A program made the position numbers and the translations under genes. A DNA stretch of 63,466 nt, counting the filler, from Octopus bimaculoides (taxonomy: Eukaryota), in NCBI RefSeq assembly GCF_001194135.2. It is 5 parts of 4 records of this genome, joined end to end, with 100 filler letters (N's around TTAATTAATTAA, not from the genome) between each part and the next. Parts side by side here need not be neighbours in the genome. Positions count along the whole stretch, not along the records: positions 1 to 30,731 come from NC_068981.1; 4 more parts are not named here. The stretch is one strand, 5' to 3'. Below, in pieces: positions 1,095 through 30,731 of the stretch. Each line of letters begins with the position of its first letter. Within the stretch, counting starts at the first letter, position 1. The notes under the pieces were generated by a model, which saw only the letters and a list, made by a program, of their open reading frames with translations, searched no databases and was not told where the DNA came from.

Positions 1095-1147
<53 letters not shown>

Positions 1148-2402
1148 TGTTATTTAAAATGTGCAGATGATACATAATTTGGTGCATTGGGCAACAAGTC
1201 TATAATTAAAAGCCTACGAGCTGGGATTTAAGAAATCATAATAAAAATATCATGCTAGACAGGAATCGGCTGTAGAATGTGATCAGTCGTTAATAGAGCA
1301 ATATTGAATTTAGAAGTTGTGAGAAACAGAAGTACAGTACTTTCCAATAAGTACAGTTGTTTTTCTTGTTGCTGTTGTTTAGCTATAAGGCAACCGTGCT
1401 CTAGCAGGTTCACGGTCAAAGGTGTTCCAACCGTGACCATGCCGTACTTTTTCAAACCGGGAAATCCAGTTTATCAAACGTTTTATTACTGTTTGGAGAT
1501 TGACGGGCATATGATTTGAGAGAAATTTAGCTGCTATTTTGAGCAAATTGAGTGACTGTGGGCAATTCCCTCATTAGCGTGTTCCGACAGATGATACTGA
1601 CAAAAGTAAAATATTTGTATCAAATAAATGTAATGTAATCAATGGACTCCCTAATTAGTTCGTACCGAGGAGGCACAACCATGTTAAAAAAGCTATTACA
1701 AATACATTGCATTAAGTGTCTTAAAACGAATCGTTCAAATAGTCATCACCAATTAGAATTCTCATTAACAACAAAAGGGATAACAGGTTTGGAGGCATTA
1801 AGCTATCAAAAGAATTATTATATTCTTCATTACTTGACATAAATATTTGACAACGCTTTAATGCCAATCAATTATGATGTTATATATTGCAAAATCTCGT
1901 AATTGGCTGACCATGGCGGACGTTCTGGAAATATAGAAAGTATTATAAATGCCAGAATCGAATCTTGAATTGATGAGTATGAAATTAATACATGCAAGGT
2001 CTTAAATGCACATATAGTCATGTATCCACATAAATGCACACAGAGATAAATGCACACACAGTCATGTATCAACATAAACATTTACTATAACACGCGGGCA
2101 CACACACACACACACACACACACATACATACATACATACAAGCATACATGTCGATGTTCTCACGCCGTAATCTTGTCACGAAACCACTGAATGAGGTGTG
2201 ATAATATGTTGCAGTCGACTTTCAAATACTGAACTATTAGTTGCTACAAGGTTTAGTTGGAAACTTGGCTCCCAATAAGCAATAATTATTGTATTATCCA
2301 ATAATTTTATTACAGATTCCGAGTTCAAATCATACCGAATTCAAATTTGCCTTTCATCTTTCTATGACTGATAAAGTAAAGCATCCATATTATATTCGAG
2401 TC

Positions 2403-2609
2403 TACGAGGGGTGCTGAAAAGTTCTTGGCCTTAGGGGTGTCGCGAAAGGCCTTGTTGGAGGCCCAACATTCCGAGTTCTTTTACAGGGCTTAGCAAAACT
2501 GAAGGACCGCAGCAGTCAAATGTATGAATCTGAGAGAGGAATATATTGAATAAAATCCTCCTGTATTTTCTTTTACCCAAAGCCAGGAACTTTTCGGTAC
2601 CCCTTAGTA
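2403..2609 (+). mobile_element. Mariner-derived MITE
   Basis: TA-flanked TIRs tacgaggggtgctgaaaagttcttggc / gccaggaacttttcggtaccccttagta; retains transposase C-terminus KCMNLREEYIE*. Confidence 0.8.
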
Positions 2610-3387
2610 TATATAAGCTCTCAAGAGATTTCTGGCCTGTTGTTTATCTTAGAAATGATTTACCTTTAAAAGGAAGAAAGATTTTCTCCAATTTTTCTAG
2701 CTATTTACTAAAATACTTTGTTTTGTTGTTGTTATCGTAGTTTTATTAGTGGCCTAAAATCAAACGGCTTGTGTAACAGAAGATTGGACGTTTTAATGCT
2801 AAAGAAATGAGATGTGATGTTCATAACAGCATATAAACAAAGCGATATCATTTCGATTAGGGAGTAAAGTTGCTTCTCCACGCCGCCTCCAATTGCAGGA
2901 AAGGTTACCTCTTACTCAACATTGACTGCACGTCAACCAGAACATATGTGCTGTTATTGTTGTTTAAATACAGCATAACTCAAGTCCACTTCATTTTCTC
3001 TAGACACTAGAGCCATGTTTCGGTGAAATTTAACTGCTATTTCTAACACGTCTAAAGGCCACCAGCAGGCTATTCTGTTGACACGAGGACATTTGATTAA
3101 TATTACATGTTACAGGTGAACACAGTTTTGGAAATAACATATAATGGACAATTAACCAAGATATCGACGTTTTGTATCAGAGACATTGCAATTTGCCCAT
3201 AATAAGACCTATGTTTAATTCTCAAATGATGCGATTCCTATGTGAAAATTTGTAAGTGAATATACACAATGCGATCTTTTGTGACATTGGCACAAATAAC
3301 CTATTTGCTTCATCTATAAGTCAGTTGGTCTAGACACTTTTCGATTGCTGACTAACCATAAAAAGACATGATTTTATCGGTTAATCT

Positions 3388-3602
3388 ATTTCAGTTATTA
3401 GACTGTGGCTATGCTGGGGCACCGCCTTGAAGAATATTAGTCGAACGAATCGACCTCAGTATTTGGGGGGGGGGGTTCTTATATCCTGATACTTATTCTA
3501 TCGGTCTCTTATGCCGAATCGCTAAGTTACGGGAATGTAAACACACCAACACCGGTTGTCAAGCGGCAGTGGCAGACAAACACATACACAAGGACACACA
3601 CA
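3388..3602 (-). mobile_element. SINE family A 3' half, ending in its AC tract at the hammerhead foldback (other fragments 21-80 minus, 5210-5352 plus)
   Basis: gactgtggctatgctggggcaccgcc..gctaagttacggg..ggttgtcaagcgg. Confidence 0.8.
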
Positions 3603-3661
3603 CAGTATCAATTCATTTCGCTTTCTGTGCCGAATTGACACATAAAGCTCATCAGTTAAGC
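3603..3661 (-). ncRNA. Second, inverted hammerhead copy (stem I degenerate)
   Basis: Minus strand reads gcttaa-CTGATGA-gctttatgtgtcaattcggcacagaaagc-GAAA-tgaattg-ATA-ctg; core and stem II intact, stem I poorly paired. Confidence 0.55.
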
Positions 3662-3864
3662 TTACTACGTAAACGATTTTTAAAAATATATTTACCTCTC
3701 CGTGCGCGTCTGTTCAACTGAAGGCACAGCGACATCCAAACGAACATTAGCTGAACAGACGCGCACGGAGAAATAAATGTTTTTTTTAAATAGTTTACGT
3801 AGTAAGCCTAGCTGATGAGCTTCAAGTGTCAATTCGGCACAGAAAGCGAAATGAATTGATTCTG
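3603..3864. repeat. Foldback (about 115-bp inverted arms, about 30-nt spacer), possibly a Penelope-like element remnant
   Basis: cagtatcaattcatttcgctttctgtgccgaattgacac... is the reverse complement of ...gtgtcaattcggcacagaaagcgaaatgaattgattctg; inner arms ctccgtgcgcgtctgttca / tgaacagacgcgcacggag. Confidence 0.9.
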
Positions 3865-3866
3865 GG
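3807..3866 (+). ncRNA. Minimal type I hammerhead ribozyme motif
   Basis: Stem I cctag/ctggg; CTGATGA 3812-3818; stem II gctt..gtgtc-aattc-ggcac..aagc; GAAA 3848-3851; 2-bp stem III with near-palindromic loop (atgaattgat); AUU triplet 3859-3861. Confidence 0.7.
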
Positions 3867-6160
3867 ATAACTACCCTCCTCTTATAGTTTTATAAATGGG
3901 GACAACCGTTTTTCTAAATGTATTTGCTACATTCTCCGTGCGTGTTTATATATAGTGAGAGATGTGTGGTTTTGGAGAGTTTTAACTCTTTTTTCTAGCA
4001 AACTGGTACATATTGTTCCCTGACTTTATATATATTTTGCTTATTTAGATTATGTTTGCTAGCCACTTTATCATTATTTTTTTAAAGATAATGATAACTT
4101 ATTTGAATTTTATATATATATATATATATNNNNNNNNNNTATGTGTGTGTATATATATATACATATGTATATAATATATATACATATATATATATATATG
4201 TGTGTGTGTATATATACACACACATATATATATGTGTGTGTATATATATATACATATGTATATAATATATATACATATATATATACAGATACACAAATCT
4301 GTATAAATCTTGTTTTGTTTAGACCTTTGTATATATTATTCGCGATTAAAGATGTTAGAGTTATATTTGTGCTGTATTAACTGTAGATGAAATGTAGACT
4401 TAAACAGAAGTATTTCTCTCGTAGCAACAGTTAGCAACAGTTAGCGAAATGAAATGATAAACGCATAATATATTGACTGTGAGTAACTGATGTTTGTAAA
4501 TGAGTAGAAATCCAATTATTCGGGAATTATGGTATTGATTTCATTTTATGAGATTAGAAGAGAACTAAACAAGTGTTCCTGTTCAGATTAAGTATGGTAA
4601 TTGTTTATCTTTTAGAGCAGAGATTTTACTATACATGTGTAAGTTCTATTAATAGTTTGGAGATTATTTTATATTATTTCCGAATGAGGATACGCTAATA
4701 TAGTTTGTGCTTCTTATGCTGAAACATGAAAATGTTTCTGTGTTCTGTATGCAGCTTTGCATCAAATATTCATTATACGCTCAGATTGCACATAGCATAA
4801 CTCTAAAAGAAAAAAATCTACATTTATTCACAGTATATTTTTCGTCATGTAAATGTTAATGGTTATGGCGACATAGAAATATGAATTGTTGTTCTTGTAA
4901 TACATGGGATAGTATAAGACACACCGTAACTGAATAAAAGACGAAACGTTTACATTTGAAAATTCTTTGGTCAGATCTAACAGGGGACTAAACAGCTACC
5001 ACAACAGCTTCAACAATGACAATGACGTGTTACAAGTCTGTGGTTGGAGCAGAAGACACTTGCCCATGGTGCATCGCAATGAGATTAAACCCGAAACTAT
5101 AGACAGACATATTAGCTATTAAATGTGTGTCTTTAAACGTGCTTGTATATCTCAGCTTGGCAACAAATGTGTATCTCTCGACTGGACAACCAATGTATTT
5201 GTATCGCTCAGTTTTATGTCCCTGTAACTTATCGGTTCGGCAAAAAATGACCAAATCTATACTATACTTAAAATAAGAACTGCGGTCGAGTTGATCGACC
5301 TAAACTTATCAAGATGGTAGGCCTGTATGGCCGTAGTTCAATGACTGAAATACTTTGTAGAAATAATATCCAAATCCGCCTCAAACCATACTCTACTGTA
5401 TTAAATGAGAAATGAATGCGTTTGATAATGTACACCTGCATATTTTAGCACGATGAGATGCTCACAGATGAAATGTTTTTGATTATAAAGCTGACCTATG
5501 TTCTTGCTGATGTCTTTTACCATAGATCTGCTTAATCTGATCTGACATAGAGATAAACAGCTCGATCAGATATAACATAGGGCTAAACCATCTATCCATC
5601 AATAAACACATACATACATACATACATACATACACACATATTATAAGAAGTAGGAAGAGATGAAGGGGTTAGAGAAATGAGAGATAGGTTACTGTTAAAA
5701 TGAAGCTTTGTGAAACACGTGGAAAATCCGTATATTACATAAAGGCGATAGCAATGCAGTTAGAACATTAATATATAAAATGCCAATAAGAAACATATTG
5801 AAACGTTACTTTAGAAATATCTAATTAACTTTGATATTTCGAGTTTAAAACCTCTTTTACAAAAATTTTAAGGAACAAAAGAGAGATATATTAATATACG
5901 TTCCTTTCTGTTGATATGTCAAATCCTTAAATGGGATATTCAAATTACCATGCATGTAAATATGTAGAAATTTGAGATGAGGATTGTATTCCATGGAAGT
6001 ATTTATATGTGAATGTGTGTTGTGTATGAAATAGATATAAGTATATTTCATATATATTCGCAGTAGATAATATTTTTTGCCTATTTCTAGTGAGTTCTTC
6101 AAAAATTCTTTTACGCATGAAATATTTTTTTTATTATGAGAGATATTTTCCTCAGCATTG

Positions 6161-6202
<42 letters not shown>

Positions 6203-6321
6203 NNNNNNNNNNNNNNNNNNNNNNNNNNNNNNNNNNNNNNNNNNNNNNNNNNNNNNNNNNNNNNNNNNNNNNNNNNNNNNNNNNNNNNNNNNNNNNNNNN
6301 NNNNNNNNNNNNNNNNNNNNN

Positions 6322-6358
<37 letters not shown>

Positions 6359-7893
6359 ATGTGTCTGTGTGTCAATACCTGTAAATATATTACATGCATA
6401 TTACGTATATACATACATATGCATATATCTATATAAGCTATACATATGTATCCACATAAGCACACACACACACTCATACAAAATCATGTATACACACATA
6501 CATACATATATGTATGTATATGTATGGGTATCTATGTATGAATTTATGTATGTAATGTATATGTATNNNNNNNNNNNNNNNNNNNNNNNNNNNNNNNNNN
6601 NNNNNNNNNNNNNNNNNNNNNNNNNNNNNNNNNNNNNNNNNNNNNNNNNNNNNNNNNNNNNNNNNNNNNNNNNNNNNNNNNNNNNNNNNNNNNNNNNNNN
6701 NNNNNNNNNTATATATATATATATATATGCATGTTTGTATGTATGTATGTATGTATGTGTTCATAATTAGCTATGTGCTTGGAGACTTAAGAAACTTCCC
6801 ACATATTTCTTTCTGTTGTGTTCATTAGGAGCATAGAATAAAGCCTGAAAACTAAACAGCTGTATGCACGATCCAAGCTTAAAAATCTATTATTATTCAG
6901 CATATATGATCCAACCTCTCTAAACAATGTTGAAATTACATTTTAATCAGATTTATGATACGAAAAATTCAATGTGCGACATCATGAACAGAAAATAATA
7001 ATGGCTGAAATTAGAAAGCGTGTTCAGAGAATTTTACTGTACGTGACATTGCTTGTTTATTATTCTTTTAGAAATAAGTTACCATATATACAAATTTTAA
7101 TTATGTTCGATATTTTATACAAGAAATCCTTAGATCTTTCCTCCGTTTCTCAAGATACCAGAGAAAATAATCGAATAGTTTTTTTTTTTTTTATATTTAA
7201 CTGTATATCTTATTGATATACCACGACTTATGTTCATTCTTTTTCTCCAATTATCCGTGTCATTAAAAGGTCTAAAGAAAAGTATGAGTCAAAGAGATAA
7301 TCTGAGGTTCATGACAATTTGCTGTCAGATTTTTTTCCTTGGACATTTCGCGCTAACCTTTCTCTAACACAGAGACCAATAAGGAAGAACAGATATTTGC
7401 AACATAGGTTTATTTCCAAGGAGATAATTTTCCATCACAGTAGTGATTGATCTCTGTGATGATATTTTCCTCGAGCAACTATATTCTAACATAAAACATA
7501 TAACAAACAATAACTAAACTCTAGAGGCATGGGATTCATTGGACCGAGACTATTATTTAATGTAATATTTTTCCTCAATAAATACCTTTCGATCGAAATT
7601 CAAAGTAGAAAACAATCGAGAAACTAAAACAATCTAAAGCAAATAGCTATAAAGATTAACGTTGGTTAAAGACCTAAATATTTATTTCTATAAAGAATAT
7701 AGATTGATATTCGTGGTGTTTCTCCTTGCCATATTAAGATGACTTTTTATATTTTTTGTGTGGGTTTTTTGTTTGTTTGTTTTTTAAGTAAAATGAAAAT
7801 AGAACCTGAAACCTGAAGAAAACCGGAATGCTAATCCATGGAAATATGCCATAGCTAAACATAGCTAAACATTTTGTGAGGCATAAAATAAGG

Positions 7894-7932
<39 letters not shown>

Positions 7933-7954
7933 AAGAGAGAGGGAAATTATTATT

Positions 7955-8345
7955 TTTGTAGCTGACAGAATCGTTTGAGCATGGGACAAAAATGCTCAGC
8001 GGTATTTATATACGTTCTGAACTCAAATATCACCGGGTCGACTTTGAAAGTGGAGAGATAGCAGAATCGTAAGTGCGCCGGATAGAGTGCTTAGCAGCAT
8101 TTCTTCCTAATCTTTATGTGCTGAGTTTAAGTTCTCCTGAAGTCGACTTTGTCATGCATCCTTTCGAGGTTAATAAAATAAGTATCAGTCAAGTACTGGG
8201 GTCAATGTAATCGATTTACCCATCTTCTTTCAGAATTGCTGGCCTCGTGCCAAAATTTGAAGCTATTAAGGCGGAGAGGAGACAAATTTGTTAGCACGTC
8301 GGACAAAATGCTTTAGTGGCATTTCGACTAATTACGTTTCATTAT
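7955..8345 (+). mobile_element. Cluster of SINE family E copies (others: 15880-15985, 20560-20705, 34150-34345, 43690-43835, 44341-44467, 58885-59085, 60420-60615 plus; 46135-46245, 47432-47640, 50790-51075, 54690-54810 minus)
   Basis: Recurrent aaatgcttagcgg..gagttcaaattccgccgaggtcgactttgcctttcatcctttcggggtcgataaaataagtaccagtt..ctggggtcgatgtaatcgact. Confidence 0.8.
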
Positions 8346-8389
8346 GTATGTGTGTATGATATATACAAACGTGACTATATACATAAATT

Positions 8390-9250
8390 AAGCCCAGAGA
8401 ACTCTAAAGGAGAATTTCTGGAATGTTTTTAAAATCTTCATTGTACCACTAATCGATCAGTTTGTTTTGTTCTTTCTTGGAAATCCTCAGAGATTCTAGG
8501 CTTTTGTGTTAATATGTTGTTGCATAGACCAATGCAGCTATAATAACCGGTACAAATGACAAGCCCGGATTAAAGAGTTGTAAGTTCCTCATCAACTTGC
8601 CAATGATGTCCTTGTTCAACCATTTTACAAAACTTTCTCATCCAATTAGTAACTAACCGTTACAAGTCATGATTTTGCTTCCTCTCCTATAGAACAATAT
8701 CAGGTCTGTTATGCTTGCACCAGACTCCAGTTTTTATTGAAATGTTCTGCTAGTGTTCTGCATTTTTAAATGTGTGTTTACATTCTAATTTTGCGATATG
8801 TTTAGTATAACTGTCAGGGCAATCCTTCCAGCGGATAGCATTGTAAAAGTTATTAGCAACGATGTCATGTTTTATTGGAAGGTAGCACATTGTGATAGCT
8901 ACTGATAGTGTAGGTTGTATCTGCCACTCTAAAACAACAAACATTTGCTATCATAACGTGAAGATAAAGGAACCTTATCTCTCTTATTGATCAGGCTTTT
9001 AGTAGTTTTCTCCTATTCTTGAATAGTGACAGCGTTTCATGTATTGAGAAGGTAATGTATATATGAGAGGTTGAAGACAGAAAGTGTAGTTGGCATCTTG
9101 TTGCTTGCGAGATACGTAGTCATACATAATTTTTGGTGTTGTCATGCATAACTTGGTATGTTGAGTGTTCTCCAAGTTTCACTTTAAGTAGGTTTTTATA
9201 CCCACGTTACGTACAGCTAACATAGCTCTTAGTAACTCCTTTTAAAAATC
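8390..9250 (-). mobile_element. Decayed non-LTR retrotransposon 3' fragment with restriction-like endonuclease (RLE)
   Basis: Minus-strand frameshifted remnants: QE*EKTTKSLINKRDK..DSKC (zinc-knuckle region), KHDIVANNFYNAIR, KHNRPDIVL (PD motif), LMRNLQLFNPGLSFVPVIIAAL. Confidence 0.7.
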
Positions 9251-9303
9251 ACAAAGCACACTATGTACTATGATTGTGCACATATTTGAGCATTGTTTTT
9301 ATG

Positions 9304-10210
9304 TATGGGATGGTATAAAAGATTTCCCAGACTAGTTCTGTAGCGTGCCAACAGATGTCAGCACACGGTTGCGTACGCAGAGAGAACTAGCAATGGCCTT
9401 TATGAGGCAGTGTGCCGAGTGACTCGCTGTGTTTACTTCGCAAGTTGTAAAATTTGTGTTTTTGCGATCACGTGTATGCTGTAGTCTGCGATTTTGTCAT
9501 GGACAGGAAGTTGGAACAAAGAGCCAACGTGAAACTTTGCGTTAAACATGGGAAGTCTACTACAGAGACATTGAGTGACGAGGTAATGGGTCGTACGCAA
9601 AGTTTTGAGTGGCGCAGGCCCTTCAAAAGTGGAAGAACATCACTGGGAGACGACAGGCGATCTGAAAGACTTCCCACGAGCGTCACCCCCGGAAATGCAG
9701 CATTGTGCATCAGGAATTCGTCTCCCAGGGTTAGACTGTCATTTTGAGAGTTCTATTGTGACATTTTGAAGCGTTTGAGGGAGGACATTCAGCGAAAGCG
9801 ACCGGATCTGTGGGGCACAGAGAATTAGATTCTTCACGACGACAGTGTACCCTGTCACCAAGCTCTCCTCACTCGTGAGTTTCTCACCAAAAGCAACATG
9901 GTATCACTTCTTTATCCGCCAGATTTAGCTCCTACGAACTTCCATCTCTTCTCCAAGATGAAAATGCAGCTCAAAGGTCGCTGTTTTAACACCGTTGTCG
10001 AGATCCAGAACGAATCGCAGAAGGTCCTCTACGCGCTTACGAAAAACGACTTCCAGGCCGGATTCCAAACATGGCAGGAATGCTGGAACCGGTGTATTGC
10101 TGCAGAACGGGACTATTTCGAATGAGACGATGTTAAAACTTAGATAATATTTTTTTTTTAATTTATTATTAAACATAACTAGTCCTGGAACTTTCTGATA
10201 CCACTTCGTA
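9304..10210 (+). mobile_element. Internally deleted mariner transposon
   Basis: Degenerate TIRs (tatgggatggtataaaagatttcccagactagtt / aactagtcctggaactttctgataccacttcgta); N-terminal HTH MDRKLEQRANVKLCVKHGKSTTET..; C-terminal LYPPDLAPTNFHLFSKMK..WNRCIAAERDYFE. Confidence 0.9.
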
Positions 10211-10640
10211 CATGAATATAGTACGTAAATATAATAAGCATATGCTCATTGTATATACGTAAATAGGTACGTTGGTATGTATATGCGTTTGTTTATTTGT
10301 CTGTAATTACATCACCAGTTGTATTTATGCATATATGTTTTATGTACACACGAAGGTATAGCTATTAGTATGTGTGCGTGTATTTATTCTGTTCGTTGAT
10401 TCATAAAGGGAAGTTTAGCGATGTGGTGCTAAACTTGTTTGATAGGCAACTGAACTGTATATAAGCGTCTCTGCTGTGTCTTCTGACACAGGCAGGAACT
10501 AATAATTCAAGATAATGGAAAATTGTGTTGATGAATCAGCCTTCTTACTAGATACACGGTAATTGTGCTTCTGTAACGCACCTACTTCAGCAAGATATAC
10601 AAAGCTAATTAACTTCAGTAATCTATGCATACATACTTAG

Positions 10641-10676
<36 letters not shown>

Positions 10677-11347
10677 AATGTTCACGCCTGCACCTATAAA
10701 ACAATTTGTACATGTAAATGGTGATTCTCTCATCGTTAACTCACCAATTATAAAGAAATCAATGATATATTGGGTACCAACATTGCCAAAATAAGTTCGG
10801 AGTTGTCTTCTGTATTTTCTAAAGTGATTAAAATAATGTCAATCATTGAGCTACTGTTGTCTTTTTCTTTTCCACCGCATAAATATTTCCAATTCAATTT
10901 TGATTTTGACTACACTAAATATGTTAGCACTATTTACCTATTACTTTCCGTGCTGGAGCTGCCTTTGAGTACTTTTTTTATGAACTATCTTGAATTCAGT
11001 TAGTCTCACCAGACAACTCCACAAAATACAAATGCGCGGATGCCTCTCTCAAGCAGTCTTCTCGAAACCTTATCCAATCCGCCATCTACGTCTTCGCAAT
11101 AGTTTGTGAGGGAGCATCTACCCGGTCATTTGACTTCAGCAAAATCTCGTCCAAATCGTTTTAAATAACGAATATACTAGCCAAGGTAGTAGTCTCCAAT
11201 GAAGACAAACGGGATTGTCACAGATGGAACGTCTTTAGTTATAGTTCTCGATGAAGACAAACCAGTGACTCAACAACAGCAACATCATATGTCTGAAAAT
11301 CGAGTTGGAGGTTCAGTTTTCATTTATGGGCTAATGCCCATGAAAGT

Positions 11348-11647
11348 GGATGCACATGGCCTAGTGGTTAGAGCAGCGGACGCGCGGCCGAGGGATCTCG
11401 GGCTGGGCGATGTGTGTGTTTATGAGCGAAACACCTAAAAGCTCCACGCGGCTCCGGCAGAAGGTAATGGCGAACTTCTGCTGACTCTTTCGCTACAACT
11501 TTCTCTCACTCTTTCCTCCTGCATCTAGTAGCTTACCTGCGACGGACCGGCGTCCTGTCCAGGTGAGGAATCTATACGCCAATGAAACCGGTAAACCACC
11601 GGCCTTTGTGAGCCAGGCATGGCTCGAGAAGGAACAAACAACAACAA
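11348..11647 (+). mobile_element. tRNA-derived SINE family C, possibly V-domain type
   Basis: A box tggcctagtgg; cctgcgacggaccggcgtcctgtccagg resembles V-domain SINEs (from recall); (AAC)n tail. Confidence 0.65.
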
Positions 11648-11910
11648 TGCCCATAAAAAAGAAACTAGCAACCTCACATTATTTTCACTCTCCCGAGAGA
11701 GTATAGCAGAACAAGGTTTCAATCCCTGAGTGAATTCGATTCATTTCACTTATGCCTTCATTTAATTCCTTTGAAAAAAAAGAGCATGATCGACTTAATT
11801 TACCCTTCTCTTAATCTATGTAGTAACTAGCAAATGAGTTAATCAATGTTTCCTCTTCGTTGGTAAATCTGAACGTATGCCTGAATGTGTGTGTGTGTGT
11901 GTGTGTGTGT

Positions 11911-12244
11911 GAAGGCGCATGGCTCAGTGGTTAGAGCGTCAAGCTTACAATCATGAGGTAATGAGTTTGATTCCTGGACCAGGCTGTGTTGTGTTCTTGA
12001 GAAAGACACTTTTACGTTGCTCCAGTTCACTCAGCTGAAGAAATGAGTTGTAATGTGACTGGGGCCAAACTGTATCGGCCCTTTTGCCTTTCCCTTGGAC
12101 AACATCGGTGGCAATGGAGAGGGGAGGCTGGTTTGCATGGGCGACTGCTGGTCTTCCATAAACAACCTTGCCCGGTCTTGTGCTTCGGAGAGTAACTTTC
12201 TAGGTGCAATCTCATGGTCATTCATGACCGAAGGGGGTCTTTAC
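11911..12244 (+). mobile_element. tRNA-derived SINE family B
   Basis: A box tggctcagtgg, B box gtttgattcc, CORE-like gtgttcttgagaaagacactt; inverted copy at 28012-28354. Confidence 0.85.
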
Positions 12245-12257
12245 ACTTTACTTTTTA

Positions 12258-12326
<69 letters not shown>

Positions 12327-12356
12327 TGTATACACACACATACACATGTGTGTGTG

Positions 12357-13620
12357 TATTGGGTTGTCAAAAAAGTTCGTTCGCTTTTTTAATTGAAAAA
12401 AAGACACAAGTTTTGAACACAATACGATATATTCAATCAATGATATAATTGCCGTTTCGTTCCAGTACCTTCTGTTGTCTTCTAGATAGACAGATCCATT
12501 ATTCCCTGCTCAAACAATTTCCTGTCTTTACTAGTTAAAGACTCTTCAAGGTGAATGTGTTACATCCTCTTCAGAACTGAGGGTCTGTCACTCAATAAAT
12601 TTTGAAGAGGTCGAAACAGGTGCAAAGTTGAAGGTGCAAAGTTTGGCGAATATGGAGGGTGCGGCAAAATTCCCCAACGAAACCCTAGTAAGTTCTACCG
12701 TGTCTACAAAGAAACATATGTTCTGGCATTGTCGTGATGAAAGGCAATTCTTTTAGGATTAGCAAGTGCCAGATGCTACTGGCGAGTCGCTGTGTTTAAT
12801 TTGTTCAGTTAGTCACGGTGCACATCCAAATTTTTGGTGCTGTTCATGGGAAGAAGCTCGTAAAAGATAACACCCTTCCAATTCCACCAAATTGAAAGCG
12901 TAAACTTCTTCGAGTAAAGTTTGGCTTTGGAGGTTTGGTTTTGGCGGTTTGCCGCGTTCCTCCAAGGATTACGTTTCACATTTACGTTTCACATTGTTAT
13001 AGACGATCTTTCGTCCCCTATCACCATTCTCTTGAGAAAAAAATCGTTTCTTTCATGTTTCTGACACGAATTGAACATGGAAAACCGTTGGGCTACGTTA
13101 GCCACATTCAAGTGATGTGTGACCCAAACATCGAGCCTACTGACGTAATCAAGTAGATGCAGATGGTTTTCAACAATTTATTTGGACATTAGAGGAATGC
13201 CTGCGATCATCCTGGTCGTATAACGGGGGTTGATGTTGCTGTTAATCACTCTTGGCAGCCCAGAGTGAGATGCAACATGCACCGAAAAATTTCCCGACCG
13301 AAATCTTGAAAACTACTTCAAGCACACACTTTACGTAACAACATCATCTCCGTACACAGCACATATCTTCCTACAGGTTTCCGCCGCTTTCTTGCCTTTA
13401 TTAAAATAGAAAAGTATGAGGGGTCGATTATGTTCGTTTTGGTTCTCCATTTTCACACAAAATACAGTCTATCTCGACGCAAGATCGCATCGGACAACGT
13501 TGAAGTATCATATATCTAACGAGTGCACATGCACAAAGGATAGACTGGAGTTAGCTACTCATTAGAGAGCTTGAAGTGTAGTGTCGAAAAAACCGAACAG
13601 ACATTTTGGGCAACCCAATA
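12357..13620 (-). mobile_element. Full-length (about 1.26 kb) dead mariner, mellifera-like; pseudo-transposase 13450..12433
   Basis: TA-flanked TIRs ttgggttgtcaaaaaagttcgttcg / cgaacagacattttgggcaacccaa; minus strand MENQNEHNRPLILFYFNKGKKAAETCRKICAVYGDDVVT* ... QKVLERNGNYIID*; internal stops. Confidence 0.9.
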
Positions 13621-13640
13621 TTTATGTGTGCATGTATGTG

Positions 13641-13701
<61 letters not shown>

Positions 13702-15148
13702 NNNNNNNNNNNNNNNNNNNNNNNNNNNNNNNNNNNNNNNNNNNNNNNNNNNNNNNNNNNNNNNNNNNNNNNNNNNNNNNNNNNNNNNNNNNNNNNNNNN
13801 NNNNNNNNNNNNNNNNNNNNNNNNNNNNNNNNNNNNNNNNNNNNNNNNNNNNNNNNNNNNNNNNNNNNNNNNNNNNNNNNNNNNNNNNNNNNNNNNNNNN
13901 NNNNNNNNNNNNNNNNNNNNNNNNNNNNNNNNNNNNNNNNNNNNNNNNNNNNNNNNNNNNNNNNNNNNGGTGTTATTCAACTCTTTATACTTCCAACAAA
14001 TGTTTCGAAGAAAGCATTGCTATCATTCCAGAAGGAACAAAATGATGTAAAACAATGCAATCTTCTCATCAGGGACAAAAAAAAAGAGAAACAAATATAC
14101 ATATATATTTGTATCTAAGTATATATACATATATATGTGTATCTATGTATATACACATATATATGCGTATGTGTGCATGTATATATACATACGTATGTGC
14201 ATGTATATGCATGTTTGCATGTATAGGCCTGCGAGTGTGTATGCACGCATGTGTTTGTATGTTTAGTGCGTATGTCTGTACGTGTATCAATATGTATGTA
14301 TGTCATTATTCAGTTATTATTTCAAGATTCTTTGTAAATAGAGAAAGAGCCAGTTTCTAACCTAGATCCAAGGTTCCTTCATTGGAATTTCAATAACAGC
14401 AACAGGTTATTTTTGCATGTATGTATATGTGCAGTATTTGGAGTCAATGCATGTGCAGATTTGTATGTTTTGTTTTATGCATATAGTTGCATGTTTAGAC
14501 ATGTGCATATAAACTTCTGGAACATTTTCCAGATTTTTACAGTTCCAGTGATGGATTGGAAAGCTGTATTCTTCGAATCCGTTTTCTCCTTTCTGATTTT
14601 GAGTAGCCTAATTTCTCAAGGTTGGCACGTAGTTACGGTACTACAGATAGAAAGAATCTGTTTACCTGTTGAGCTGCTGTTTTTGTTCTGTTCCTCGGTT
14701 GTGTTGTTGTTGATGTTGTTTCCAGCCATGTTGTTCGTAGTAACTCTCTGCATGTTAAATTCAAGCTTCAGTCGAAAATTACTACGATCTTGAATAAAAG
14801 GCTCCCTCAGTTAATTTATCTGAAGATTAACCAATTATTTAACAGGTCTGATGGTAGTGGCCTCAAAGCTGGAGATAGTATTCATCGTATTTTCAATAAA
14901 TAGTCGCCCACGCCAAATACGCGACTTGTCCCTTCAAGTGTGGTATGTATGTTGGAGTGTATGTGTGTGTTCATATCTGTGAGCATCGCTTAGAATATTT
15001 TTGCATACAGTTTAGCTTCACTGCCTTGTTTAACTCCTTGTTGCAGTTGGTTACTACTTATTTCTTTTATCTTAGCTGTTTGCTTATTAAACAGTACCCA
15101 AATCTTATAAATGGTTGAGTCCATAAGTGATTTTATTCTACTTGACAG

Positions 15149-15232
15149 GTGCAACAGGAAATATACCAAGGTTGGCAGCGTTATCAATTGTGGTATGGGG
15201 CGAGCAACCACGACATAAACACGTTCACGTAG
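15149..15232 (+). CDS. Putative terminal coding exon (short-tail form) of a class B1 secretin-family GPCR: VQQEIYQGWQRYQLWYGASNHDINTFT*
   Basis: Acceptor attttattctacttgacag|GTG, phase 0. Peptide fits the class B1 helix-8 pattern VQxEIxxxWxRxxL (cf. PTH1R VQAEIKKSWSRWTL), and class B1 genes have a conserved phase-0 intron at NxE|VQ. Upstream 7TM exons were not found. Confidence 0.65.
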   Translation: MQQEIYQGWQRYQLWYGASNHDINTFT

Positions 15233-17022
15233 AACAAAAATATCGACAGAGCTTGTACGTTGAACTTTGATCGTTCAGTGTCACATTAAGGATAAGACAA
15301 AAAAATATCCATGTAAAGGATCATCATTGTCATCATCATCATCATCATCATTTTGAAACAACGAAGTTTGTCCTCTGTAATCGAAACATCTGTAGTGTTC
15401 GTTTTTGTTGTCTCTGGGACAGTAATAGAACTTAGATTTAACGTTGTGAACGAATGAATTGCTCGTTAATTGAACTCTTTTGCTGCCGCTTAGAAGGAGA
15501 TAAGGGTGAACTGTATGTCGTGTTTACTTCACTGCCGTCTCGTTTGTCTGTGGCCAAAAAAGAGTGAGTGTGCTCTTGGTACGTTGTTGTTGCTGCTATT
15601 GTTCTTGTTCTTGTTTATCCCCTGTTGTAGCAGCGCAATGATCAAAGGCCTTCAAGCCGTAACCATCATCGTGAATTCTTTTTTCACGAATTATGTACTC
15701 TTGATTACATTATCCACAAACATTGGAGAATGTAATCTGGAGTACATTTGTTCATTTATTTTTTGTAGATCTTTATTTCTTCATAGATATTTTGTTTATT
15801 TCTATAGATCATACGGCGTAATTATCAGGTTTTAAGTAAACCATTAGACGAGTCGTTACAGCATCGGGTAAATTGTCTTATGGTAACCAATCTGGATCTC
15901 TCCACTCAAAGTTCCTATCCCACAGGCTTCAACTTTGCCTTTCATTCGGGATCAATAAGTAAAGTACCAGTCTTGTATTTAGGTCAATTCTTCTCCTCCT
16001 CTCACTATTTCTGTCATTGTTTCAGTTTTTCTCTTTCCAGAAGATATCGATTGTGATCAGAATTGTAGAGGGATGGGCACCACCAGGTCTAAAAATGACG
16101 AAGACATACCATATGTCATGACTTCGCCCCTATGACTCCATCAAGGAGGTGAAGTTCTAAAGCAAAACAATACGAAGATTTGGTTGCCATTTCTAGAAGG
16201 CCTAGAGACCACGTGAAGGCACTGTTTCGCTGGCTCGGTCCTTATATGTATATGAAGTGGGCATCAAGTGTTCTACACAATAGAAAATGTATTTACAACT
16301 CAGTAGATTTAGCCCATAAATGGCTAAATTTATCGAAAATTAGTAGCAAACTGATTATTTGGTTCATGCCCCTTAACTGGTAAGGCTAACTGCAACCCCA
16401 TGTCAATAGTAATTTTCAAATTAGCTTTGCTTTTGTGTGTGTGTTTATGTGTATATATGTATATATGTATGTATATGAGTCACAGATATAATAGGAGAAA
16501 ATGTGTACTTTTGTAGGTGGCAGAGTGCAATTGTGTGGATGTGTTTGTGTGCAAAGTACGTGTGAGTGTGAAATCTAGATAGGAGAAAATATCTGTTCAT
16601 CATTCGCGTTATTGTATGTATAACTGTGTGCGCATGTCTGTAAGTATGCGTGTAAAAACTAAACACCAAAAGGTTAGCTGGCTTACGCTATTTTGCTTAA
16701 TCCATCTAAATTCTAAATACAAATCCCTTCGTAGTCGACATTATTTTTCTTCACACAACCCGAAATTGATAAAAACAGTTTAAAAATAAAAAGAATTAAG
16801 GTAAATAACTGAAAGTGTCATTGACATAAATTTGGATAATTAAGTTAAAGTGTAGTGTACCGATTGTCATACGGAAACAGTTCTTGATTGAAATTTATGT
16901 TTAGTTGGAGAAAGTGTCAAAAACTCAGTGATGAATGTTAACAGACTCTCAAAGAAAGGGAAAATAATTTCAATAAAATATTATAAAAAGGTTTCAGCCT
17001 ATAATCATTCCGTTTTGCTTAT

Positions 17023-17535
17023 ACGCAGGTAGGAAAGCCTTCTTTTTTCTGTCGAGTGCTTATGCGCCCCTTTATCAGACTATTTTCTTTAGTCATTGCA
17101 CGGTGATCGCCATAAACTTTAAGCTTATATAAAAATACCATTGTTATTATTTACAGGATTGTAAATCACGGTGCCGTAATAAAAAAAAAAACATTCGCAC
17201 CGAAAGCATAGAGAAAGTTTGTTTAGATAAAAACAAATACGAACTAATATATAGTTCTTAAATTTGAAAGAAAGAGGGAGGCTGATTCGCTGGTGTAAAG
17301 GTAATACACTTAGTCGCGTTAGCAAAGGGATGTAGGTTCGCCTCCCACGCAGATAGGAAAGCCTTCTTTCTTCTGTCGAGGGCTTATATGCCCCTTTATT
17401 AGACTATTTTCCTTAATCATTGCACGATGTTCGTCATAAGCTTTAAGCTTACATAAAAATACCATTATTATTATTTACAGAATTGTAAATCACGGCGCCA
17501 TAATAAAAAAAAAAATCATCCGCACTGAAAGCATA
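17023..17535 (+). repeat. Tandem duplication (period about 324 bp) with a tRNA-like head between the two copies
   Basis: 17023-17215 matches 17347-17535; A-box-like tggtgtaaagg 17291-17301 and B-box-like ggttcgcctccc 17335-17346 lead into copy 2. Confidence 0.8.
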
Positions 17536-19313
17536 TATAGATAGATAGATTTCTACACATTCAAATTTTAAGCATAATCAGGATCATGTATTTAGCCGCG
17601 CTGTGAAAATAGACTTCGGGATTTCACCAACCAGGAAGAACGTACGAATCGACTAAATGAATTTGCATTAAAGGCATGATCAGGATTCTGTTACTTTCCT
17701 CTGGTTGTTTGATGCCAAATTTCTGCTATCTAGGTCTGAAACTGTGAAATTAGAGCATATATACACTCATTTACGTTTATATGTCAATATGTAAACAGGA
17801 TTGGGCTAAACTAGACCATTTGACAAAGTAATTCAAACTTGGTCGTGCGCATTAATTACGTGGCTTAACAATACAGTGTATTGGAGATCAAATTTATAAG
17901 CAGATAAACAAACACATATTTAAGAAATATATGTTTAGACTCGCCGTAAAAATAGACCAGGTATTTTAATCGACGTCTATTTTTTTCCATAGTGTGTTGT
18001 TTATCTACATTCTCTCGGTAACCAGAGGGAAAATAAATAAATCGTGGCGTAGCCTCTTCTCTATATACATAGAGATATACTAACGCTTGTGTGTGCGAGT
18101 GTACGTGTTTAAGTTTGGGGCGGAAGTTAGTTTTGACTACAATTGCAAGCTTCATTTTGACTAGATCTTCAAGTTTAATCAACCAGAAGTTGACTGAGCC
18201 GTCAGCCGAAGTTCATTGTCCCAGTCAAAACTAGTTATATAATAAATTTTACTCCAATTTAGTATTGAGTCTCCTCGTCAGTAAATATTCTGTTGTTACC
18301 CTTTAAATTTCTGGAGAATAATAACCTCAAAATTAACACACATGCACATACATATGTTGTATATGATAAAGCAAACGGTTTAGATTTTCGATTATAAAAT
18401 TAACTTGAGATACAATCAATCATTCTACAAGTACAAATCCAATATCAAAAAATCTTGCACAAAACCGTTTGCAAGAATCAAACAATGAATTTGTTGTAAA
18501 CTAGTCGACTGTGTCATCCATTGCACCCAAAAGCTCCCAGTTCAGTTCGTCTGCTGAGATTAATGCTTATAAAATGCTGTTACACAAACCACATGAGAAT
18601 CCTTGTTATTTTCGGAGCACTTAACTTTAGTCTGCAGAGAGATTATTTCACGTTTCGTTTCTTTAATCATTTAACATGCTTTTCGTAACTGAAATTTTCC
18701 GCACTATTGTGATCGAAACAATCACAAGCATACTAAATTCTAGTTGTAGAAGAAAAATAAAAAGGTAAAAATTTTCCATTATAAAATAAACTTTAAATTA
18801 AATTTGACGCTTTACAAGCATAAATCCAGAGCAAGAAAAGTACGTGGAGTATTTAAATTGTGAAAACTATGTTAAAATAAAAATATAAAACGTGAAAAAT
18901 TAAATTATCTCTCCAACAGCTTAGAGTTAAGTGCTATGAAAATACTGAGGATTCTCGTAAACAGACGAAATAGGTAAGTAGCTTCTGTAACAGCACTTAA
19001 TAAGCACTAATACGTGTGATTGCAGCTCTCTGAGAATGCTTTGGTACAATGGTTAACACGGCTAGGTGATTTACGACAGTTTTGGGGATCGGTTCATGCG
19101 TGTGGTTCAACATTATATACATGTGCATATTTATCCCCATGTCTTGAACACGCAATTGTATAATGTTTAAAATGTATTCCTTATACATATGTATGTATTA
19201 TGTTCTGTGACTTTATATTACATTGCAACTGTATCTCTATACATATAAGGACGCGTGTCAATATATGTGTAGAGAGAGAGAGAATGACATAAAGTTATAT
19301 ATATATATAATTT

Positions 19314-19349
<36 letters not shown>

Positions 19350-19506
19350 ACGCTTGCTTTCTCACTATATATATAAATTTCTTTATATATATCTTTATAT
19401 ATATATATATATAATCTTTATATGTATATATCTTTATATATATGTCTTTATATATGTATTTCTTTATATAGAGATATATATATATATATGTATATATTAA
19501 TATATT

Positions 19507-19551
<45 letters not shown>

Positions 19552-21459
19552 ATAACTTTATATGTGTATATATGTATATATCTTTATATATAGATATCAT
19601 TATATATATACATATCTTTATATATATATCGTTANNNNNNNNNNNNNNNNNNNNNNNNNNNNNNNNNNNNNNNNNNNNNNNNNNNNNNNNNNNNNNNNNN
19701 NNNNNNNNNNNNNNNNNNNNNNNNNNNNNNNNNNNNNNNNNNNNNNNNNNNNNNNNNNNNNNNNNNNNNNNNNNNNNNNNNNNNNNNNNNNNNNNNNNNN
19801 NNNNNNNNNNNNNNNNNNNNNNNNNNNNNNNNNNNNNNNNNNNNNNNNNNNNNNNNNNNNNNNNNNNNNNNNNNNNNNNNNNNNNNNNNNNNNNNNNNNN
19901 NNNNNNNNNNNNNNNNNNNNNNNNNNNNNNNNNNNNNNNNNNNNNNNNNNNNNNNNNNNNNNNNNNNNNNNNNNNNNNNNNNNNNNNNNNNNNNNNNNNN
20001 NNNNNNNNNNNNNNNNNNNNNNNNNNNNNNNNNNNNNNNNNNNNNNNNNNNNNNNNNNNNNNNNNNNNNNNNNNNNNNNNNNNNNNNNNNNNNNNNNNNN
20101 NNNNNNNNNNNNNNNNNNNNNNNNNNNNNNNNNNNNNNNNNNNNNNNNNNNNNNNNNNNNNNNNNNNNNNNNNNNNNNNNNNNNNNNNNNNNNNNNNNNN
20201 NNNNNNNNNNNNNNNNNNNNNNNNNNNNNNNNNNNATAGTCCATTAATTTCTAAACCTTCTCTTTATCTTTTTTAATTGAATCTGATATTTGGACGTATG
20301 TACAGAGAGATAGAGAGAAATAAAGAGAAGGGAGACTCTTTGATATTTATATTAATATGAATAATTAATTTCCAAATATTTAGCTGAACAAGACATAAGT
20401 TAAAAGAAATATGCTTATGGTATTATGAAAAGGATGTTTTCTTAAATATATATTTTTCATTGCACATTCAGTTCATGTAAACTGTTATGTATTACCAGTG
20501 TCATATATTTCAATATTGCTAACGTTATACGTTTCACTGTTGTCAATGTTATATATCTCAGTCCGGTGCTAGTTTGACAGAATCATTAGTACGTTTCACA
20601 AAAGCATCAAGATCTTTGCTCCAGCACTTAACGCATCCAGTTCAAACCCGGCCAAAATCAACTACCTTTTATCTTTTCGTATTTCATAAAATAAAGTACC
20701 TGTTAACATATGCGCGTGTGTGTATGTGTGAGAGAGTGAGAAAATAAGTTCAAAAAGAACAATTCAGACTTTTTGAGAGATCCAAAAAGAGAGAAAAATT
20801 TATTTCTAATAAAGATTCATCAGAGCAAGTAATAAGAATATGAAAATAATAGTTGAAAAATATCGTTATAGGTATAAATATACCATAAACAAGTTTTAAA
20901 AAGTGAAAGAGAAAAAGATGTTGAATCAGAATTAGATTTAATACAAAATTGGATTCAATACATACGCACGTTTCAAAAGACAATACAAATATGTAAGAAA
21001 AAATTATAATCATAGTAATTATAATTAAATTTATGCATTGTCATTCTCATTAGTGTAAGAAATATTTGGAAGGACATCAAAAACGGTTTAAGAAAATAAA
21101 ATAAAATATTACCCCACCTGTATTCTCCCTTATTGTATCTTATTCAACTGTCTGTGATTCCAAATTTCAAAGGAAAATATGGCAGTGTGATGACATAGGT
21201 AACACGACTGATGGGAAATTGCAATACCTCGGCTAGGAAACGAAACTATGATTTCGATTCGAATCCTCGAATGTGTATTTCTATTCCATTATGTCCCCCT
21301 CTGATCAGATAGAAGTAATACATGCGACAAGAAATACTTTTAGGACAACAATTGTGGGTTATCTGCTTTTCCTTAAATGCAATTACTCACTTACAGGACA
21401 ATCAATGAGAGAAAAGCTTGGAATACTACAGATGATAAACTAAGTTTGCTTACGATTAT

Positions 21460-21604
21460 AGGCACAAGAATGGCTGTGTGGTAAGAAGCTTGCTTCCCAA
21501 CCACATGGTTCTGGGTTCAGTCCCACTGTGTGGCACTTTCGGCAAGTGTCTTCTACTATAGCTTCAGGTCGACCAAAGCCTTGTGAGTGGATTTGGTAGA
21601 CGAA

Positions 21605-21661
<57 letters not shown>

Positions 21662-21897
21662 TGTATGTTGTATGTATGTATCTGTGTGTCTGTGTTTGTC
21701 CCTCTCCCACCATCGCTTGACAACCAATGTTGGTGTGTTTACGTCCCCGTAACTTAGCGGTTCGGTAAGAGAGATCGATAGAATAATTACAAGGCTTACA
21801 AAGAATAAGTCCTGGGGTCGACTGGTTCGACTAAGGGCGGTGCTCCAGCATGGCCGCAGTCAATTGACTAAAACAAATAAAGGAATAAAAGAATAAA
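21460..21897 (+). mobile_element. tRNA-derived SINE family A, full length, with internal (TA)n
   Basis: A box tggctgtgtgg, B box ggttcagtccc, CORE-like gcactttcggcaagtgtctt, internal microsatellite, tail ggcggtgctccagcatggccgcagtc..aataaaag. Confidence 0.85.
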
Positions 21898-22173
21898 ATC
21901 ATTGATGCTCCCTCAGATTGGTTTCGTCTGTTTTCCGATTGCTCTAAGCATAGCTGTTACAATTTTGTTAACTAGAGAAGGGTAATAACAATCCTTGGCT
22001 GTTAAGACGTAATCTTCGGTGAATATGTTGGAACTCTGAGGGATGTACATAAATGATTGTAAATCAAAGTAGCTGGGAGTATGTTTTGTACGTAATAAAA
22101 ATTCATTATCTTTTTCTTTTTGATATCTTAATATTTACTTTTGGCTTTAATTTTTTTCTCTTTTTACTTTCAG

Positions 22174-22452
22174 GTTCAAAACGAAATTTACAAAATGTGG
22201 CAAAGGTCACAGCTTAGCGAAATTCCTTGCTTTTATTGTCATTTCTCGTTGTGTAAACGTCATGAATGGAGGCGAAGCCGGAGTTACGATGCTGCTACTA
22301 GACCCTCCGACATAAGCACAGTTGTGTCAATGAGTGTGCTGCAGACACAAGACAAAGAGAGTCCAGTAGGTATGAACTGCATTGACAAACCGCTAAAGGA
22401 CCTGGAATATCAGCCGATGATGAACACTACAGGGGTCATTGAAATTAGCTGA
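22174..22452 (+). CDS. Putative terminal coding exon (long-tail form, 92 aa) of a class B1 secretin-family GPCR: VQNEIYKMWQRSQLSEIPCFYCHFSLCKRHEWRRSRSYDAATRPSDISTVVSMSV...TGVIEIS*
   Basis: Strong acceptor tttttttctctttttactttcag|GTT, phase 0; helix-8 motif; open frame with Cys cluster, RRSRS and Ser/Thr-rich tail; AATAAA overlaps the stop (22452-22457). Confidence 0.75.
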   Translation, partial: VQNEIYKMWQRSQLSEIPCFYCHFSLCKRHEWRRSRSYDAATRPSDISTVVSMSVLQTQDKESPVGMNCIDKPLKDLEYQPMMNTTGVIEIS

Positions 22453-22565
22453 ATAAACTTACAGCATCAACTGCTCCGGATCTCTGTGTCAACATACCAT
22501 TTAAAACAAGTACAATTACAACTACTACAATAAAAATCACCAACAAAGTCATCAACAACAGCAGA

Positions 22566-28011: not shown

Positions 28012-28354
28012 GTAAAGATCCCCTTCGGTCATAAAATGACCATGAGATTGCACCTAGAAAGTTACCCCACCGAGGCACAAGTCAGGACAAGGTTGTTTTT
28101 ATGGAAGACTAGCAGTCGCCCATGCATACCAGCCTCCCCTCTCCACACCAACGATGTTATCCAAGGGAAAGGCAAAGGCTGATACAACTTGGGACTTGTG
28201 ACGTCACAACTCATTTCTACAGCTGAGTGAATTGGAGCAAAGTGAAATAAAGTGTCTTGTTCAAGAACGCAACACTCAGCCCGGTCCGAGAATCGAACTT
28301 ACTACCTCATGATTATAATCCCGACGCTATAACCACTGAGCCGTGCGCTTTCAC
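28012..28354 (-). mobile_element. SINE family B
   Basis: Reverse complement of 11911-12244. Confidence 0.85.
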
Positions 28355-29655: not shown

Positions 29656-29793
29656 ATTTATATGTATATATATATATATGTATATATGTAATATATATAT
29701 ATATATATNNNNNNNNNNGTGTGTTTGTATATATTGATAGAAAGGACAACAAAAGAAAGAAAGAGACCTCGATATTATGTAAATAGATGAATT

Positions 29794-30696: not shown

Positions 30697-30731
30697 TATT
30701 TGTATATATATGTGTGTGTGTGTGTGTGTGT

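Follow-up and report, generated by a model that had tools for sequence, protein, structure and literature searches.

We analyzed a stretch of 63,466 nucleotides (nt), filler included, of the Octopus bimaculoides genome (NCBI RefSeq assembly GCF_001194135.2), referred to below as the window; it joins five parts of four records, the first of which, positions 1 to 30,731, comes from NC_068981.1 and holds the gene part described here. On the plus strand, this part very probably (about 80%) contains the 3' end of a single class B1 (secretin-like) G-protein-coupled receptor (GPCR) gene for a peptide-hormone receptor, in which an old duplicate helix-8 cassette with its own stop codon switches the receptor between a 27-residue and a 92-residue cytoplasmic tail. 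The first of two related exons is an alternative cassette of 106 nt (15149..15254), delimited by translation and by RNA unitigs covering 15147-15256. It follows the 3' part of an intron (1..15148), and its acceptor region, TAAGTGATTTTATTCTACTTGACAG (15124..15148), is used in RNA contigs of five organisms, coded A, B, C, E, and F. Its coding part (codons 15149-15229) encodes helix 8 and 13 further residues (VQQEIYQGWQRYQLWYGASNHDINTFT), and an in-frame TAG (15230-15232), located 22 nt before the exon's 3' end, closes a short-isoform peptide that ends in ...WQRYQLWYGASNHDINTFT. The splice donor GTACGT (15255..15260) opens the intron leading to the last exon (15255..22173), whose acceptor region, AATTTTTTTCTCTTTTTACTTTCAG (22149..22173), has a strong pyrimidine tract and is used both by the cassette and by the exon encoding the end of the seventh transmembrane helix (TM7). 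The coding part of the last exon (22174..22452) translates to VQNEIYKMWQRSQLSEIPCFYCHFSLCKRHEWRRSRSYDAATRPSDISTVVSMSVLQTQDKESPVGMNCIDKPLKDLEYQPMMNTTGVIEIS, a helix 8 and tail of 92 amino acids that begins with VQNEIYKMWQRSQL and ends in GVIEIS before the TGA at 22450-22452. The 3' untranslated region (UTR) starts immediately downstream (22453..22540), with flat RNA contig depth to 22540 and records continuing past that position. A pyrimidine tract and an AG precede both exons (...CTACTTGACAG before GTG in the short exon, ...TTTTTACTTTCAG before GTT in the long one), the tract of the cassette being the weaker.

The two tails differ sharply in composition. The long tail carries four Cys just after helix 8, the motif RRSRS, the segment RPSDISTVVSMS, and 16 Ser/Thr, whereas the 27-residue short tail has no Cys and three Ser/Thr. 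The long exon is coding only if the cassette is skipped.

The beginnings of the two exons are clearly alike. Ten of their first 14 residues are identical, and the short and long helices 8 differ at four positions, N3Q, K7Q, M8G, and S12Y (long VQNEIYKMWQRSQL, short VQQEIYQGWQRYQL). Six of the ten identical residues are encoded by different codons (GTG/GTT, ATA/ATT, CAG/CAA, CGT/AGG, CAA/CAG, and TTG/CTT), and the nucleotide identity between the copies is 26/42. In a six-frame translation of the whole window, the partner was the only peptide matching either copy at eight or more of 14 positions, the next best reaching 7/14. When 16 random base changes were placed in the 42 nt, none of 20,000 simulations kept at least ten identical residues, and the Nei-Gojobori estimates between the copies were ~1.1 (saturated) for synonymous sites (pS) vs 0.24 for nonsynonymous sites (pN). 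As synonymous sites are saturated while the residues were kept, selection at the protein level acts on both helix-8 copies. DNA alignment found no similarity outside the first 42 nt, either in the introns or deeper into the exon. Judged from the sequence comparison, the resemblance between the exons is a genuine and ancient one, preserved at the protein level. A preliminary description of this DNA had reported the two phase-0, acceptor-led frames, the 10/14 identity with its six codon differences, and the contrast between the tails, all of which translation (15149-15232 and 22174-22452) and codon comparison reproduced exactly; its suggestion of an old duplication with both copies under protein-level constraint is borne out by the simulations and substitution estimates.

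Public RNA runs of the same organism (organism A) contain both exons; the junction evidence consists of assembled unitigs, raw reads being very scarce. A 164-nt unitig covering the cassette is present in each of runs X20 and X7. The 5' overhang of this unitig, GCTGCTTTTCTGTTTTTTGAATAGTG, reads ...ALLFCFLNSE once the AG shared by both sides is added, and leads in phase 0 into V-Q-Q-E. Its 3' overhang, TCAAAACGAAATTTACAAAATGTGGCAA, is the start of the long exon, and the GT fits both sides, giving a direct junction from 15254 to 22174. Correspondingly, two 5' overhangs meet position 22174 in X20 and X7, one being the 3' end of the cassette (TCACGTAGAACAAAAATATCGACAGAGCTT) and the other the end of the TM7 exon (...TGGCGCTGCTTTTCTGTTTTTTGAATAGTG). 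The skip junction from the TM7 exon end to 22174 was found in organism A runs X20, X7, X4, and X13 and in organisms B, C, and F, and X29, X34, and X45 are among the runs that show it; the junction from cassette to long exon was seen in organisms B and C as well. The upstream 26-30 nt are identical in the two junction types, and both exons are joined in phase 0 to one upstream exon ending in ...CFLNSE. Since one upstream exon joins either 15149 or 22174, and 15254 in turn joins 22174, the short exon must be internal, a cassette of 106 nt, and is not a terminal exon. Both its acceptor and its donor are used, its reading frame contains a stop, and skipping it lets the frame run on into 22174. In the include form, the TAG limits the receptor tail to 27 residues, and the long exon then serves as 3'UTR.

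The same data locate the end of the cassette in RNA. Coverage in X20 and X7 stops at 15254/15256 and resumes at 22174, depth is zero past ~15256 (15268 to 15318 zero), and neither AATAAA nor ATTAAA occurs within ~970 nt downstream of the cassette stop. With the donor at 15255 used, RNA stopping there, and no poly(A) hexamer nearby, we conclude that the gene has a single 3' end and that the switch consists of including or skipping the cassette. The preliminary description had proposed alternative terminal exons governed by a splice/polyadenylation switch, in which transcripts would end after either the short or the long exon. The stop of the short exon could in principle make it a last coding exon, but every RNA contig with the short exon crosses the GT donor into 22174, and together with the zero depth beyond the donor and the missing hexamers this renders the proposal very unlikely. 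What stands is the core of that description, one receptor with two tails produced by alternative splicing, with RNA junctions running from one ...CFxNxE exon (here CFLNSE) to both 15149 and 22174; the terminal exons and the polyadenylation switch do not.

The RNA also bears on two further explanations. The exons could be the tail exons of two tandem paralogous receptor genes, each joined to a different upstream seven-transmembrane (7TM) region, a scenario for which nothing speaks beyond the presence of two homologous exons 7 kb apart. The cassette and the long exon, however, lie on the same RNA contigs with identical upstream sequence, and the six-frame motif scan, in agreement with the preliminary description, found no 7TM exon between them, so that two tandem genes are excluded. 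Alternatively, the junction unitigs could be chimeric products of the de Bruijn graph, or the assembly could be mis-scaffolded across the N gap that lies between the exons (19635-20235), and the scarcity of raw reads behind the unitigs lends this some weight. Nevertheless, the same junctions at canonical sites (AG/G...GT) recur independently in ~10 runs from five organisms and several studies, and DNA-type contigs run colinear through the intron-exon boundary at 22174; we thus regard an artefact as extremely unlikely. The gap itself is inside the intron and is crossed by no reading frame, and as RNA contigs join 15254 to 22174, its two flanks are parts of a single transcription unit, correctly ordered and oriented. 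This intron, whose assembled length is approximate owing to the gap, also contains repeat copies. In the readable sequence of 15255..22173, the six-frame motif scan revealed no further helix-8 copy.

The joined peptides identify the receptor family. When ALLFCFLNSE followed by either tail was searched with phmmer against the PDB, all 60 listed matches were class B1 GPCRs, aligned at TM7/helix 8. The best match of the long form was the secretin receptor (3e-4), followed by the PAC1, glucagon, VPAC, GLP-1, and PTH receptors, and that of the short form was the GIP receptor (5.6e-5), followed by the glucagon, VPAC1, and secretin receptors; the ranking differs between the helix-8 copies, and 24 helix-8 residues do not allow a subfamily to be assigned. 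Class B1 receptors share the TM7-end and helix-8 motif CF(L)N-x-E8.49/V8.50-Q-x-E-(I/L)-x-x-x-W, in which E and V are invariant (PMC8796428). In the octopus gene, ALLFCFLNSE is joined to VQNEIYKMW or VQQEIYQGW, both fitting N-x-E/V-Q-x-E-I-x-x-x-W, and the intron lies precisely at the point where TM7 gives way to helix 8, after Glu8.49 and before Val8.50. The class B1 identity and the intron at NxE/VQ given in the preliminary description are thus supported by peptides that match nothing but the class B1 TM7/helix-8 region. RNA contigs reach 1,301-1,804 nt upstream of the tail exon, long enough for a full receptor. The family B receptors described in Octopus bimaculoides comprise CRHR-like, PDFR, PDFR-related, and calcitonin-type receptors and a diverse ‘cluster B’ (PMC7200681), and candidate subfamilies for the present gene are PDF-R, calcitonin/DH31-R, CRH/DH44-R, PTH-R, or a mollusc-specific cluster.

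The long tail had one match in an exhaustive protein search, P0001, from a distantly related species (54% identity, E = 3e-14; 52% in pairwise BLASTP). The open reading frame (ORF) of P0001 runs through the acceptor into the orthologous tail exon (...FYLQ/VQHEIVKTWQRSRLSEI...GRSRSYDGVARPSDISTVVSLS...QPMIN), which lies at 10268-10546 of a 314-kb contig (L001; ENA assembly ERZ21867824) with the acceptor at the same position. This exon keeps the Cys cluster and the motif RSRSYD..ARPSDISTVVS, and blastn detected no DNA similarity between L001 and the window except a microsatellite. Because 52-54% protein identity persists without detectable DNA similarity, the long tail is conserved over a large distance. 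Over the 42 nt of helix 8, nucleotide identities were 26 for short/long, 29 for long/L001, and 24 for short/L001, values from which it follows that the duplication may or may not predate the split from the L001 species. No TM7 exon was found within the 10.2 kb upstream of the L001 tail exon. A protein word-index search with the long tail, and with the TM7 end plus the short tail, gave no matches, a weak negative given that the same index missed P0001. The called genes neighboring the L001 exon contain stops under the standard code.

Use of the cassette differs between samples. Within organism A, X25 yielded one 2,223-nt contig with the include junction only (depth 25), and X13 one 1,723-nt contig with the skip junction only (depth 28). 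X4, X5, X13, and X14 contain the long exon (X4 at depth 105) without a cassette contig. Both forms coexist elsewhere, the include vs skip unitig depths being 5.2 vs 7.1 in organism C and 7.7 vs 12.2 in organism B. The choice is close to all-or-none in some organism A samples, where ‘none’ is to be read as ‘rare’ since contigs drop rare variants, and inclusion of the cassette looks regulated.

Close relatives share this organization. RNA of five species (A plus B, C, E, and F) contains the cassette, spliced in every case to the same end of the upstream exon, and at least three species express both mRNA forms. The cassette shows a single difference in organisms B, C, and E, A15221G (T25A), and the substitutions listed for the long exon of organism F are five synonymous and two non-synonymous. 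Overall, these species diverge by 1-6% in the exons.

Taken together, these results suggest how the switch could have arisen and how it would work. The helix-8-coding 5' part of the last exon would have been duplicated long ago, with the upstream copy becoming the 106-nt internal cassette. As the intron lies between E8.49 and V8.50, any alternative 3' exon would have to supply helix 8, which a duplicate of the first 42 nt does. This need of an alternative tail exon for its own helix 8 would explain why the helix-8 codons were duplicated and kept in both copies. Through its weaker pyrimidine tract, its own donor, and its stop codon, the duplicate would act as a regulated cassette. On skipping, the TM7 exon is joined to 22174, and the receptor would have the helix 8 of the last exon and the Cys- and Ser/Thr-rich tail of 92 residues; on inclusion, the receptor would receive an altered helix 8 and only 13 more residues, the long exon being read as 3'UTR. 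Both mRNAs are presumably translated. The short isoform, without the putative palmitoylation and phosphorylation sites, would then be expected to differ in desensitization and trafficking, and its altered helix 8 could possibly change G-protein coupling.

The main rival to this two-tail switch is a ‘poison’ cassette, whose inclusion would produce an unproductive mRNA and thereby lower receptor output in some tissues without giving a functional short protein. Several features would fit it: the cassette length is not a multiple of three, a stop lies inside, and inclusion lengthens the 3'UTR by ~300 nt; the residues after helix 8 have no recognizable motif and one of them is variable; and sample-specific inclusion is what regulated unproductive splicing would give. 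However, residues kept at saturated synonymous sites are expected only of a translated copy, and the include form is the only one assembled in X25, at a depth akin to that of the skip form elsewhere, and is thus not visibly unstable. The position of the stop is also relevant. In vertebrates, a stop nearer to the last junction than 50-55 nt escapes nonsense-mediated decay (NMD) that depends on the exon junction complex. The cassette stop, 22 nt before the last junction, falls inside this range, so that by the vertebrate distance rule the include form would not trigger such decay, and the retained helix-8 residues likewise depart from what an NMD-targeted poison exon would show. We therefore consider a poison cassette unlikely, while ranking it above the other competing explanations.

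A number of points weigh against the two-tail switch itself. Neither isoform has protein evidence, and the tail peptides alone have no Pfam match, being too short. The 7TM and extracellular exons lie outside the window, so that subfamily and ligand are not assigned. No second helix-8 exon was found within 10.2 kb upstream of the L001 tail exon. Contig depths are a poor gauge of isoform ratios, as rare variants are lost from contigs. Finally, the cassette differs by only ~1-2% among the species that share it, which gives its cross-species conservation low power, and no match exists for the 13 residues that follow the short helix 8, one of which varies (T25A in B, C, and E).

Tail switching in peptide receptors is already known, and the closest precedents come from other protostomes. 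In Drosophila, 21 of 49 neuropeptide GPCR genes, including three of the five family B receptors, have alternative C termini (PMC9624432). One PDF-R isoform has no predicted beta-arrestin phospho-codes and the other has several, and one Dh44-R2 isoform lacks them altogether (PMC9624432). Like the Drosophila PDF-R PA/PD, Dh31-R, and Dh44-R2, the octopus gene would encode a protostome secretin-like receptor whose cytoplasmic tail is exchanged by alternative splicing. The arrestin phospho-code of the Drosophila study (PMC9624432) has one match in the long octopus tail (TRPSDIS) and none in the short one. The octopus gene, which need not be an ortholog of any of these receptors, would differ in that its alternative part begins with the very first helix-8 residue, is a recognizable duplicate of the 5' end of the constitutive exon, and works as an internal cassette with a stop.

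The best experimental model for possible roles of the tails is another mollusc neuropeptide GPCR with two tails, the Aplysia receptor apTKRPR-A/B. Its two splice isoforms are reported to be alike except for the intracellular C terminus, and only one of them desensitizes in a phosphorylation-dependent manner through C-terminal Ser/Thr (PMC11365428). Unlike the octopus gene, apTKRPR belongs to class A and to another gene family, and the abstract mentions no exon duplication (PMC11365428). By analogy with the Aplysia TKRP receptor and the Drosophila PDF-R isoforms, the short octopus form would lack desensitization that depends on tail phosphorylation, and roles of the tails in palmitoylation and in desensitization through GPCR kinases and arrestin are plausible.

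The splicing logic has a counterpart in the metabotropic glutamate receptors mGluR1a/mGluR1b, where an inserted cassette with an in-frame stop swaps a long tail for a short one and turns the downstream coding exon into 3'UTR. That receptor belongs to class C, its cassette is no duplicate of the downstream exon, and helix 8 is not re-encoded. Tandem duplication, alternative use, and purifying selection on both copies also recall mutually exclusive tandemly duplicated exons. The octopus exons are indeed homologous neighbors (10/14 residues), but unlike mutually exclusive exons they do not occur one per mRNA, as the cassette and the long exon lie in single RNA contigs; only in the protein do they exclude one another, since translation terminates within the first copy.

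The distinctive feature of the octopus gene is a cassette that can be recognized as a copy of the terminal exon's helix-8 portion. It illustrates how a class B1 gene with an intron at the TM7/helix-8 boundary could gain a second tail, by duplicating the start of the exon and letting an upstream stop decide. The principle remains unchanged, since GPCR tail isoforms, including those of Drosophila family B receptors, are well documented. The two forms would nevertheless offer a natural isoform pair, helix 8 plus 13 residues vs a Cys- and Ser/Thr-rich tail, for studying tail-dependent desensitization in an invertebrate peptide receptor, and the short exon, with its 28 codons, is one that ORF- or homology-based annotation could overlook.

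RNA and DNA differ at two positions of the long exon. The RNA contigs of X25 have G at 22235 (TAT>TGT, Y21C) and at 22300 (AGA>GGA, R43G, within the conserved RPSDISTVVS motif), X20 RNA shares only the change at 22300, and X13, X4, and X7 carry A. Over the long exon, each of four DNA-type runs, representing four samples (X2, X10, X12, and X37), shows an unbranched contig identical to the window, and two further DNA runs, X1 and X9, gave no contig there; in organism B, position 22235 is G. Cassette inclusion is a feature of the runs carrying G. Both positions are candidate adenosine-to-inosine (A-to-I) editing sites or mark a rare haplotype, and folding of the long exon (z = -0.04) revealed no local structure that would support editing.

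A more far-reaching proposal, which we put forward tentatively and hold to be rather doubtful, is that the cassette forms an ancient tissue-specific, possibly neural, switch. The short form would then be a second functional receptor, its helix 8 re-tuned by loss of the basic residue before Trp (K>Q, M>G), free of palmitoylation and phosphorylation sites, resisting desensitization, and perhaps coupling differently, and the long tail would in addition be recoded by A-to-I editing (Y21C and R43G) in the conserved Cys and RPSDISTVVS motifs. If this were true, splicing and editing would jointly diversify the cytoplasmic face of one peptide receptor.

The remainder of the window was searched for other parts of the gene. 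Runs of N occupy 4130-4139, 6203-6321, 6567-6709, 13702-13968, 19635-20235, 24737-25228, 26866-27576, and 29709-29718. Six-frame motif scans of the whole window detected no class-B-like exon besides the two helix-8 exons, and a Pfam search of plus-strand ORFs of at least 22 amino acids in 1-15148, which has low sensitivity for short exons, gave no match to any family, 7tm_2 included. The 28-mer encoding the TM7 exon end (GCGCTGCTTTTCTGTTTTTTGAATAGTGAG, ALLFCFLNSE) had no match in the window with up to two mismatches on either strand, and among RNA contigs placed on the window none from the receptor gene covered 14400-15146. The TM7 exon, absent from the readable sequence, could lie upstream of the window or in one of the gaps at 4130-4139, 6203-6321, 6567-6709, and 13702-13968. 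Neither Rfam families nor tRNAs were detected when the window was scanned for them.

At the other end of the gene, RNA contigs run at least 49-78 nt beyond 22540, and because they continue past this position, the AATAAA hexamers at 22452 and 22529 are not the sole end used. The first of these (22452-22457) overlaps the TGA of the long tail (TGAATAAAC) and is not the main poly(A) signal, as the contigs pass 22540. Two microsatellites, (TAC)n at ~22570 and (AAT)n at ~22850, break the RNA contigs short of a mapped 3' end.

Several repeats lie in and around the gene. A degenerate remnant of a mariner-type transposase occupies 9829-10122 on the plus strand, probably together with 9451-9744, within the intron upstream of the cassette. 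In the PDB, the ORF at 9829-10122 aligns with the catalytic C-terminal portion of Mos1 and SETMAR (E = 2e-8); it has no Pfam match, and it served as a control showing the limited sensitivity of Pfam on fragments. Just upstream of the last exon lies a short interspersed repeat (21770-21890), with related copies at 3372-3602 and 19-73. Its words reach a depth of ~170,000 in RNA contigs, which come in many variants, some of them with a T/A run next to the repeat. The repeat has no tRNA or Rfam match; presumably it is SINE-like and shared by a very large number of transcripts. Between the two exons, the intron also contains a direct repeat of ~190 nt (17023-17210 and 17347-17535, 89% identity). 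Pieces of 14451-14625 (for example, 14530-14560) occur in many RNA contigs and raw reads that run into unrelated sequence, marking a dispersed repeat and not a receptor exon. Two copies of a ~350-nt repeat, richer in G+C than their surroundings, lie in opposite orientation at 11909-12250 and 28006-28354 (83.5% identity). Finally, two inverted copies of a 200-nt repeat (29790-29989 and 30499-30700, 94% identity), separated by ~500 nt, resemble the termini of a small transposable element.

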